DNA of 62,947 nt, filler included, from Choristocarpus tenellus KU-1152 (taxonomy: Eukaryota > Protista > Phaeophyceae), in the NCBI GenBank assembly GCA_964200185.2. It is 9 parts of 9 records of this genome, joined end to end, with 100 filler letters (N's around TTAATTAATTAA, not from the genome) between each part and the next. Parts side by side here need not be neighbours in the genome. Positions count along the whole stretch, not along the records: positions 59,558 to 62,947 come from CAXNAD020020363.1; 8 more parts are not named here. One strand, given 5' to 3'. The notes beneath the pieces are model-generated. The model saw only the letters and a program-made list of their open reading frames with translations. It was not told the origin of the DNA and searched no databases. Below are positions 24,053 to 62,947 of this stretch, one piece after another (position 1 is the stretch's first letter; each line of letters begins with the position of its first letter). The position numbers and the translations under genes are program-made.

Positions 24053-24311
24053 GAGTGAAAGTATCATAGAGGGTAAGAGTTTTGCCCTGTTTGTCCCTTT
24101 GGGGCTTGACTTTCCCACACGTATTTTAATGACATTTTCCTACTCCGAAATGTTTCAGAGGAGATAAAATGTATACATTATGAAAAGGTGTGTCCGGAAC
24201 AAGGATATTGACACTTGCTAACAAACACAATGCCCAAAATTACATCAATATCGCAACATTGGATTTTGTCCCCCAAATGGACACAGCTCTACCCTTAAGA
24301 TAGATTGACTC
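24053..24311 (-). mobile_element. MITE family A copy
   Basis: Full TIRs; flanks CGAA/TGAA (4-bp TSD with one CpG transition). Confidence 0.88.
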
Positions 24312-59060: not shown

Positions 59061-59559
59061 AGATGGAAGTATGGTTACCTTACTTTTTGCAATCGTTTCT
59101 TCCCGCTTTGTGTACAGAATACCACCTGTCCACGGAAGAATTACAAACTCTTGGACGGAGGTGGTGGAAGTCCTCCTGTTGAGTGATGACAGAATTTCAC
59201 AAAACTCAGATGAACATGCTGTGATGACCCTGCTGAGCCATAAACATGTTGAGTAAACTTCCTATGTCTCACTATTAAAAACTCCAATACCTTTATGGGC
59301 TACTATTTTCTAACCTTCAATCACCAGAATGGGTTATTGCAAGCATCTCACAATGTGGGTGGGGAACAGCAAGTGGACTGTGCTTGGGAGAAAAGAGGAG
59401 GTGAAGGTAGCAGCCACAGTGCTCCAGTAGCGGACCCAAAGTATCTGGGAGGGGGGGNNNNNNNNNNNNNNNNNNNNNNNNNNNNNNNNNNNNNNNNNNN
59501 NTTAATTAATTAANNNNNNNNNNNNNNNNNNNNNNNNNNNNNNNNNNNNNNNNNNNNAC

Positions 59560-60669
59560 AATAATCTCATATACACAAAATAAGGTACACTTCACTATTG
59601 TCCTATTTTGCACAGCAATAAGGTTCAATTACCAGAAAACAGAAATCCAGTAGCACAGGGCGAGGCTATTGTTGTTAGTAGAAGCCATTACATAATTATC
59701 AATAGATCATGGGAAACCTCATCTATCCTGCTTCGTGGACAAGGCCTAATATTGCATGCAGAATGATGTAACTACCCATACACATTAGCACACCTTCCTC
59801 ACAGGACATGGGGACAGCTAAACATTTACTGAGGTATACACACGGGTCTCTAGACCTTCCTTTGAGATACACGTCTAAAAAAAAAATCTGGTTGACTACG
59901 TTGATGCTAGTTATGCGAACGATTACTTGGAAGTACATACTATTAAGAGATCATCTGGGTACATCTTTGAACTAGTTGGTGCAGCAATAGCATTATAATC
60001 AAAATGACAAACTAATAGAGGCGAAATTCTCTACGGAGGTGGAGTAACTACTTTGGCAGCTGCTGATCAAGAAGCCATACATCTTGGAGAATTCGCTGAA
60101 ACGAACCAGGATTATCTGATTTTACGAACACATTGATCAGAGAGGACATCCTGGGAGCACTTCATCGAGGCAGCAACAGCGCTTTCTCTCACAAGATGAG
60201 ACACAATCGTGTACGATACAACTTTTCAAGGGAGTTAGCACCTGAAGGACGAATAGTACTAGAACATGTGGGGATTAAGACTCAACTAGCAGACATACTG
60301 ACCTAGTTTGTGGGGGATAGGAATCTTTAAAGAACCACGTATTGCAGTTCATGGCTCAACTGAAATTTGACTAGATTACATAGATATTAGCTTCCTTGAA
60401 TCATCACTAGAATGTCCTCGCCATTAAGAGCATGCAAGAAGTTGTAGGAATATTGGAGTAGTAACGAACATTGCGAATCAGTGCTGCACAAATATGTCAC
60501 AGAAGTATTGGTAGATATCAGAATATCTTATCTGATGTAACTCAAGACAATAATATATTAAGCTTATCGAACGAGTAACTGTACTGATAGCTATCCAGAG
60601 TGACACTCACAATCTCTCACTCTCTCTTCCACAACTGTAAGGACATCTATGTAATATGGTCCTACAACA
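59560..60669 (+). mobile_element. Ty1/Copia RT-RNase H remnant followed by a probable LTR (60440-60669)
   Basis: LIYPASWTRPNIA, AKHLLRY, YVDASYAND, SSGY.F.L.GA, STEVE, DQEAIHL, QLADILT motifs across frames; the LTR candidate is bounded by inverted ends GTTGTAGGA...TCCTACAACA. Confidence 0.85.
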
Positions 60670-61533
60670 TGATGCACGACGTCTAACACGGGACAGTGCT
60701 TAATTCTGGGAGATAGGAAGGTGTACCTGTATCTTGTTCCATCTTTCTTGATATTCCCGTGCCAGTCCTATAGGTGGTGACTTCTGTCTTTGGAAGTAAT
60801 AAGCTAATTTAAAGGAATGACAATTTAAATATCGATAGTAGTGGCTGTCCGATGAAATTTGAAGAAATAACAAGGGAAACCGCTTTTTAATCGTTTCCCC
60901 CTCTTCTTATCTTTCCCACCAGGTATTTATAACACGCTTCAGAATCAAAATTAACGAGAGGTACCCTCGATTGGTGCATTTTATGGGTGCTGACGTGTGT
61001 GCAAAATCCATATTTTTGAAGAAATGCGTATAGGAACTTTTCCGAATTCTATAGAATTTTTTTCAAGAATAGAGACATCTTAACATATAATCCATAGGAA
61101 AAATGATCAATTGCAGAAGATGAAAGGGATGGCTTTAAATACAATGACCATAACCTGAGTACCTCTCGTTTACCTGAGCTCTTCATTGACTTTAAAGTTT
61201 TCGTGTATATATGGTGCCACTTCCCTAATGTTGTATCGCTCCTTTGTACCTGTTGGCACCTATTCAAAGTCCAGTTGGTGCAAGGAGCGCTAGGAGGAGA
61301 TTTGCAGGATGTAGAGGATTGAGCCGAAGATAGTGAATTAGGATGTGTACAGGCTCGTTTTTGGTCCGCACACTCTATGTCAGTCTCCTTCCTTGTACCT
61401 CAAACCCGCCATCATTCTTCATCATTGGTCACCCACAAATAATGTCACATTAGAGTGGGGAGTAAGCAGTTGGTATAGAGGAATGTAAAACAGGAATTAG
61501 AAGTTCGTGGAGGAGGAATGAAGTTTAGAAGAA

Positions 61534-61705
61534 GGTCCATAGTATCTGGGGAGGAGGTCTACACCAGGGTGTCCATTTGGGCCATAATCAGAAAAAGTGC
61601 ACTTATATTATCCATCCGACATATGCAAACAAATCATCCAAAATTCGTGAAATGCAAAAATTGGCCCAATATGGACAGCCGCCACCCCCCCAGATACTTT
61701 GAGCT
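61534..61705 (+). mobile_element. MITE family B copy
   Basis: Full ends; 4-bp TSD AGAA. Confidence 0.9.
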
Positions 61706-61753
61706 AGAAGTCACCTGTTATTGCCAAACCTTCCACAAATATGCATTAATATA

Positions 61754-62012
61754 GAGTCAAAGTATCTTAGAGGGTAGAGCCGCGTCCATTTGGGGACCAA
61801 AATCCAATGTTGGAATTTTGATGTAATTTTGGCTATCATATTTGTTAGGAGATGCCAATATCCTTGTTCTGAACACATCTTTTCATAACGTATGCATTTT
61901 ACCTGCTCCGAAATATTTTGGAGTAGGTAAAATGTCCTTAAAAACCCGTGGGAAGCCAAGCCCCAAATGGACAAACAGGGAAAAACTCGTACCCTCTAAG
62001 ATACTTTCACTC
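61754..62012 (+). mobile_element. MITE family A copy (best preserved, 259 bp)
   Basis: TIR GAGT(C/G)AAAGTATCTTAGAGGGTA; 3-bp TSD ATA; internal 15-bp-stem palindrome at 61895-61934. Confidence 0.93.
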
Positions 62013-62239
62013 ATATTTATTTCAATATCTAATATTGATATCTATCGCACATACCTCTTTCTTTCCTTCGCATTTAAAGTTGTGTCAAATCCACCAACTA
62101 CGTTTGTCATTTGACGTTTATTATTGCTTCTCTATGTATATCGCTCTCTCTCTCTCTCTCTCTCTCTCTTATATTTAACGTTTATTCCCCATTTCCCATC
62201 TTCCACCTTGCCTCTTTTTCATCCTGCTCTTTCGCTAAA

Positions 62240-62700
62240 CTCAGATGATGGGTCTAGAAAGAAAATGCCCTGGAGCCCATTATTTTAACACCGAAGAAAC
62301 TTGAGGGTGACATATATGTGACAGTGCCTCCATCCCCATTCATCTCGTTGTGACGTATAAGTGGAGTTTGATCAAGCAGTGCAAGCCTGCAGCGCCTTCA
62401 AAGCCGCTACCTCTGAACAAGTAAAACCCCCAAATGCTGTAAGCTATGGCCCAAGTGGGATGATGATTGATTTTGTGAGTCACTTTGGTACAAGGAGGAA
62501 TATTGCCCAGTACTTGAAGGGCGAGAACAGGCAGTCCAGTTTGTTTAAGTGGAATAAGATCCTGGCCATTTGTCTTGACCCTAAAATCGAAATCCTTTAC
62601 GGGAGATCCAAAGAAGAATGAGCAGCACAAAGACATTTGGAGGCAGGTGGAGTTGAAAGCTCTCAGTATTGTTGAGGAGGAGCACAGAGCACACACTGGA
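62240..62700 (+). pseudogene. hAT-like transposase fragment
   Basis: LEPII..PKKLEGDIYVT...PFI followed by ILAICLDPK, a motif order typical of the hAT catalytic-domain C-terminal part; stops and frameshifts. Confidence 0.5.
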
Positions 62701-62947
62701 GGCCAATGATAATTGTCCTGTGGTGAAACTAAGCCCACATTGATGCACTGCCTATCTTGAGCGGGGGTAGACCTCCCACAAAACACTTGAGTGGGTCCTT
62801 AAGAACTTCTATTGCAATGTTTGTGGGGAGTTCAACTTGTGGTGGTGATGAGATGTTGACCCAAAGTATATCGGGGGGGGGGGGGGGGGGGGGGGGCTGC
62901 GGCTGTGGTGTTTTGGTCGGCATGATGAGTGTTGGGGGTTAGAGTCG

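Follow-up and report, generated by a model that had tools for sequence, protein, structure and literature searches.

The distance between the terminal repeat and the transposase-binding site of the P element is 9 bp at one end but 21 bp at the other, and this spacing has been likened to that of the 12/23 RSS (PMC7776569). The palindromes of piggyBac are identical in sequence and asymmetrically placed at its two ends, and piggyBat needs one left and one right end; donors that carry a pair of left ends or a pair of right ends are inactive (PMC11707139). In the Lemi1/Emigrant system, a related transposase binds both the terminal repeats and subterminal motifs of the MITE (PMC1636448).

We analysed DNA of Choristocarpus tenellus KU-1152 (Phaeophyceae) from a stretch of 62,947 nucleotides, filler included (the window). 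A preliminary description of this DNA had proposed that different MITE families share two-block ends in which a short spacer at one end and a long spacer at the other are one helical turn apart in length, and it knew of no earlier account of such ends. The last statement needs correction: the P element with its 9- and 21-bp spacings (PMC7776569) and piggyBac and piggyBat (PMC11707139) precede it as described cases of this kind of end asymmetry.

Results

Two elements with two-block ends

The part of the window that was read base by base is the piece at positions 59558–62947 (CAXNAD020020363.1), eukaryote-like DNA with a GC content of ~40% that holds two complete copies; the previously listed copies at 24053, 29364, 34177, 56392 and 58802 and 'family C' fall outside this piece. 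The two copies are short inverted-repeat elements, A and B, that are located within 61534–62012 and have 48 bp between them. Two contig sets of the source organism (X1 and X2) were aligned to positions 61450–62100 (651 nt) at a likeness of at least 80%. These alignments provide pooled statistics, in which the two ends of one element are not linked and summed word depth is not equal to copy number.

The features of element A are as follows.

61754–62012 (no strand): element A, a 259-bp MITE, with edges placed where other copies cease matching in the X1/X2 alignment
61754–61767 (+): left terminal block GAGTCAAAGTATCT
61760–61767 (+): AAGTATCT in the left end, exact match
61768–61783 (+): short spacer TAGAGGGTAGAGCCGC, 16 nt
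61784–61793 (+): left subterminal block GTCCATTTGG, exact match, then GG
61895–61934 (no strand): internal palindrome with 20-nt arms and a loop of 0 (inverted repeat I3, 90% complementary)
61963–61972 (−): right subterminal block GTCCATTTGG, exact match
61973–61998 (−): long spacer, 26 nt
61999–62006 (−): AAGTATCT in the right end, exact match
61999–62012 (−): right terminal block, reverse complement GAGTGAAAGTATCT

The terminal inverted repeat of A (I2) is 23 nt long and 96% complementary, and both termini, GAGTCAAAGTATCT and GAGTGAAAGTATCT, match G-N4-AAAGTATCT. The first 9 nt of the short spacer are identical to the start of the long spacer. The palindrome is also present in the consensus of other copies (loose ends at 61929, agreement 0.71–0.74).

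Element B carries the same two blocks.

61534–61705 (no strand): element B, ~172 bp in length, a MITE that has both blocks, another interior and decayed outermost bases
61540–61547: TAGTATCT in the left end, separated from GTCCATTTGG by a spacer of 23 nt
61548–61570 (+): long spacer, 23 nt in this copy
61571–61580 (+): left subterminal block GTCCATTTGG
61667–61676 (−): right subterminal block, here GTCCATATTG
61677–61691 (−): short spacer, 15 nt, with a C/G run of copy-dependent length
61692–61699 (−): AAGTATCT in the right end

The terminal inverted repeat of B (I4) comprises 20 nt and is 85% complementary. Its left terminus, GGTCCATAGTATCT, matches G-N4-A(A/T)AGTATCT, and in its right terminus, AGCTCAAAGTATCT in reverse complement, the G is shifted by one place from that pattern. 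The preliminary description had assigned the pattern to every full end, which holds for both ends of A and for the left end of B but not for the right end of B. Its spacer lengths for these copies agree with the sequence: A has spacers of exactly 16 and 26 nt, and B, for which ranges of 15–17 and 23–29 bp had been given, has 15 and 23 nt here, the latter being the low extreme of its range.

Abundance and boundaries of the elements

The numbers of contigs that aligned to 61450–62100 were 46,157 (X1) and 31,267 (X2). The X1 word depth was 2.9–4.0 million at the ends of A (61758–61823 and 61956–61999), ~0.55 million in the interior of A, 0.1–0.58 million on B and ~40–160 in the flanks, the depth on the elements being ~10^4–10^5 times that of the flank. 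As contigs with unique flanks have a depth of ~20–30, the number of ends present is of the order of 10^4–10^5. Loose ends of alignments accumulate at 61753 and 61754 on the left (475 and 845 contigs, respectively, in X1) and at 62012 and 62013 on the right (630 and 393 contigs, respectively, in X1), and these stops fix the boundaries of A. The loose flanking sequence of the copies is AT-rich and variable, with an agreement of 0.33–0.36 in X1 and X2.

Open reading frames across A and B had no Pfam match and no protein relatives, and no Rfam family was found; the stop-free frame of 87 amino acids that runs through A returned no candidates when used as a protein query. Having inverted repeats, small size, no coding capacity by these searches, high copy number and sharp common edges, A and B are MITE-like elements of an ordinary kind, in agreement with the preliminary description, which had called them MITEs.

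Raw reads of a second species, sequenced within the same study (X3), ~2% sampled and amounting to 1.9 billion letters, gave a single read on the 651 nt. The MITE group is lineage-restricted, being absent or strongly diverged in the second species. A literature search for the motif strings produced only unrelated primer matches, and the motifs of A and B are absent from the coral CMITE paper.

Conserved blocks and differing interiors

When the four ends of A and B are aligned, the invariant columns are A-AGTATCT, three G's of the inner G-rich stretch, and GTCCAT-T-GG. Three exact 10-mers and three exact 8-mers occur in the correct inverted order within 480 nt. A search for AAGTATCT-N10-35-GTCCATTTGG(G) in metagenomes, viral collections and 596 billion bases of prokaryote genomes yielded, among the matches listed, single and unpaired occurrences and no relatives of the elements; the spacer distribution of these chance matches was flat and represents the null for the pattern in A and B. 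Chance does not account for the two-block ends of A and B.

The interiors of A and B have no detectable repeat in common, and alignment of the spacers of A to those of B showed no significant likeness. That different families share these ends, as had been proposed, is borne out not only by the blocks common to A and B but also by the contigs. The end depth of A exceeds its interior depth by a factor of 5–7, which shows that several subfamilies have these ends in common, although diverged interior contigs lost at the 80% cut may contribute to part of this excess. At loose ends 61929 and 61940, hundreds of contigs carry the right end of A joined to different upstream sequence, and joints of internal deletion and replacement are present among the aligned contigs.

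The right subterminal block of B is canonical, GTCCATTTGGGG, in most other copies, which show two substitutions relative to this copy, A>C at 61668 (97% of the depth) and T>A at 61670 (99%). This prevalence of the canonical sequence favours the view that conservation acts on the blocks as functional units and not on the spacers.

A further short motif recurs inside both elements.

61582, 61638, 61797, 61825 (−), 61855 and 61914 (−): CCAAAAT(C), one mismatch allowed, ~tenfold enriched in A and B

Within A and B, 431 nt together, CCAAAAT(C) is found six times, as against four times in the other 2,959 nt of the piece (Poisson P ~0.001). It lies just inside the subterminal block at the short end of A and at the long end in the B-family consensus. 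The motif may be a further protein-binding repeat, and the ends are probably more than bipartite.

We also considered CCAAAATC, which lies beside the subterminal block, as a marker of homologous ends that would match the short end of A to the long end of the B consensus. We rejected it because it recurs in both orientations inside A and B, and it is more likely to be another repeated site.

Target site and superfamily

Insertion by cut and paste is typically marked by a target-site duplication. The flanks of A at its read-defined ends can be read as ATA/ATA (3 bp) or as ATATA/ATATT (4 of 5 positions). Those of B are GAA-rich and ambiguous, duplications of 3–6 bp all being possible, and an exact 5-bp AGAAG duplication fits only with a shift of the left boundary by 1 nt. 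The lack of a 5-bp duplication, as given in the preliminary description, is not established by these readings. A search for an 8-bp duplication within 3 nt of either boundary found no match.

Fixed targets are characteristic of piggyBac (TTAA), Tc1/mariner including Stowaway (TA), and PIF/Harbinger including Tourist (TWA). Of the alignments at the left edge of A, 475 out of 1,320 in X1 (~36%) cover the A at 61753. With a flank agreement of ~0.35, this proportion excludes a fixed TA, TTAA or TWA target, and the variable base before the left end rules out all three of these superfamilies. The P element superfamily is ruled out by the absence of an 8-bp target-site duplication at the positions searched and by a terminal repeat of 23 nt instead of 31 bp. 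A terminus of the RSS/Transib-like CAC(A/T)GTG type is likewise ruled out: at its read-defined boundaries A has the termini GAGTC.../...CACTC, in keeping with the earlier remark that a CAC terminus is lacking.

Spacer lengths

The long spacer exceeds the short one by 10 nt in A (26 vs 16) and by 8 nt in B (23 vs 15). A difference of one helical turn, as originally claimed, is seen in A but not in B, the short spacer of which varies between 15 and 17 nt because of an additional C or CC after 61684 in 29% (X1) and 31% (X2) of the depth.

In A, a depth of 2.9–4.0 million extends undiminished across both spacers (61768–61783 and 61973–61998), and neither contains an indel that reaches at least 5% of copies in X1 or X2; among the variants listed, those of the long spacer are substitutions at 61981 and 61986. 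As the A-type subfamilies share the sequence of these spacers, the lengths of 16 and 26 nt have been kept by descent, which says nothing about selection. The preliminary description had held that lengths are conserved while spacer sequence is not. This is true of A compared with B, the spacers of which are unlike, but not of the A-type subfamilies among themselves; descent, which it had set against its own proposal, fits the data at least within the A-type group. The long spacer of A aligns to the short one as the same sequence with ~10 nt of indels (p = 0.0005), which suggests that an inverted repeat, at first symmetrical, became asymmetric through indels. Short-type ends of A are about as abundant as long-type ends (2.9 vs 3.2–4.0 million word depth).

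At the left end of B, the depth falls from 575,978 (61560–61581) to 94,642 (61538–61559). Only ~16% of the depth on the left block crosses the 23-nt spacer, so the long spacer of this copy is atypical and the long class is loose. The depth is at flank level in the bin 61516–61537, which indicates that the outer 4 nt of B on the left are absent from other copies.

A third end was assigned tentatively.

62859–62915 (+): putative short end of the B type, decayed, by similarity judged by eye and alignment
62873–62896: run of 24 G inside this tentative end

It reads GACCCAAAGTATAT, C, 24 G, CTGCGGCT and a degenerate block GTGGTGTTTTGG; its spacer would be ~33 nt long, and the element runs off the piece. 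The run of G could be a true homopolymer expansion or partly an artefact of assembly or sequencing.

Two-block ends of unequal spacing are thus confirmed as real, whereas the 'rule' and the 'one helical turn' are partly supported and not established, the evidence for a helical-turn rule being thin and mixed.

Joints between elements and neighbouring sequences

Dozens of contigs join the right end of one A-type element to the left end of another (62012 to 61754), directly or with 1–2 nt between them. The exact joint is found in 67 contigs of X1 and 26 of X2 at a depth close to single copy, and right ends matching B (61702–61704) likewise abut left ends at 61753/61754. Such joints could stem from insertions in tandem or directly next to one another, or from a tendency to insert at the ends of elements. 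In corals, tandem arrays of MITEs have been reported (PMC2872659).

The piece carries other repeats. A different MITE-like element of ~216 bp at 60954–61169 has the ends ACGAGAGGTAC... and ...GTACCTCTCGT, with 32-nt arms that are 72% complementary, and has TTA on both sides, an exact 3-bp duplication that is the signature of Tourist (PIF/Harbinger). A decayed stretch with stops and frameshifts at 59690–60310 (+) resembles, by eye, the C-terminal part of a Ty1/copia pol (...TRPNIA..., ...AKHLLRY..., ...KTQLADILT); two open reading frame pieces of it had no match in Pfam. The motif CCTTGTACC / GGTACAAGG recurs three times (61238–61295, 61381–61399 and 62487–62505), once as a local hairpin (CGCTCCTTTGTACC ... 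GGTGCAAGGAGCG), and may be left over from a further family of repeats. An exact look-up of the 148-amino-acid open reading frame at 62340–62786 found no identical protein on record. A microsatellite is also present.

62144–62169: (CT)13 microsatellite

Discussion

Combining these findings, we consider it probable that A and B represent a lineage-specific and very large group of non-autonomous DNA transposons of the cut-and-paste type that have two-block ends and are mobilised in trans. In the model that we propose, a transposase supplied in trans would read two blocks at each end and could mobilise any interior that keeps them; families with different interiors would retain the blocks because this transposase must recognise them. 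The terminal block G-N4-A(A/T)AGTATCT, together with the G-rich stretch, would probably be cleaved and serve as the outer binding site, and the subterminal block GTCCATTTGGG(G) is the probable site for the DNA-binding domain of the transposase or for an accessory protein. The spacer between the blocks would be loosely constrained. Its unequal length at the two ends (15–17 vs 23–26 nt) most likely reflects a left/right differentiation of the ends of the parental transposon, brought about by indels in an originally symmetrical inverted repeat. Differing spacing would give the two ends an unlike geometry in the synaptic complex and, by analogy with the P element and piggyBac, may help the transposase to tell them apart.

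A stricter reading of the same asymmetry is that a short end must pair with a long one, at ~16 and ~26 nt, one helical turn apart, in the manner of the 12/23 RSS. Both complete elements of the piece do combine one short with one long spacer (16/26 and 15/23), the two types of A end are about equally abundant, the length classes persist in A and B with spacer sequences that are not detectably alike, and comparable requirements exist elsewhere, namely the unlike ends of piggyBat and the 9/21 spacing of the P element. We nevertheless regard such a rule as doubtful. The pairing is seen in two elements. The difference in B is 8 nt and not 10, its short spacer ranges over 15–17 nt in ~30% of the depth, and most B-family contigs fail to align over its 23-nt long spacer, which makes the long class loose. 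The possible decayed end with a spacer of ~33 nt would widen the range further. In A, constant length is explained by descent, given that the spacer sequences are common to the subfamilies, and the two ends would be equally abundant in any family that goes back by copying to a single founder. We also think it improbable that the elements constitute an unclassified group of eukaryotic transposons in which a true ~16/~26 synapsis rule for unlike ends operates across families with diverged spacers.

The opposite reading, in which an indel of ~10 nt in one arm of the founder's repeat hitch-hiked and the transposase tolerates a wide range of spacings, accounts for the long spacer of A being its short spacer plus indels. 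It also accords with the lack of indels at or above 5% in the A spacers over tens of thousands of contigs, a pattern that a young family should show, and with the freedom with which homopolymer slippage alters the short spacer of B, perhaps greatly in the copy at 62859. However, B too has a short and a long end despite its unrelated spacers and interior, and spacing matters in the best-studied transposons with two-block ends; a purely neutral origin of the asymmetry therefore appears unlikely to us. Differentiated left and right ends in a trans-mobilised MITE group remain our preferred explanation.

As it stands, the locus documents a new MITE group that is restricted to its lineage, is very successful and has clear two-block ends. 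Should the asymmetry be obligatory, the group would form a natural data set, with thousands of independent insertions and several families that have different spacers, for testing the means by which transposases tell a left end from a right one. This question is relevant to how the 12/23 rule originated and to the engineering of transposon vectors. If a true unlike-ends rule did act on tens of thousands of MITEs, it would constitute a counterpart of the 12/23 rule that evolved independently.

Among the described systems, the P element resembles A and B in having a terminal repeat and an inner site at unequal distances. It differs in its 31-bp repeats, which start with CATG, and its 8-bp target-site duplication, neither of which is found in A or B, and in its spacings of 9 and 21 bp compared to 15–17 and 23–26 nt. 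PiggyBac and piggyBat share with A and B identical subterminal sequences at unequal distances from the left and right tips. The termini of piggyBac are CCC...GGG and it inserts at TTAA, whereas A and B have variable flanks and the termini GAG...CTC. RAG signals, Transib and ProtoRAG also combine two conserved blocks with spacers of two length classes, but A and B have neither a CAC terminus nor similarity to the heptamer or nonamer, and their length classes are looser. Like Emigrant/Lemi1 (pogo-like) and MITEs generally, A and B are short, non-coding and high-copy, with common ends and interiors that are not common. Emigrant inserts at TA, and in this it differs from A and B, which have no fixed TA flank.
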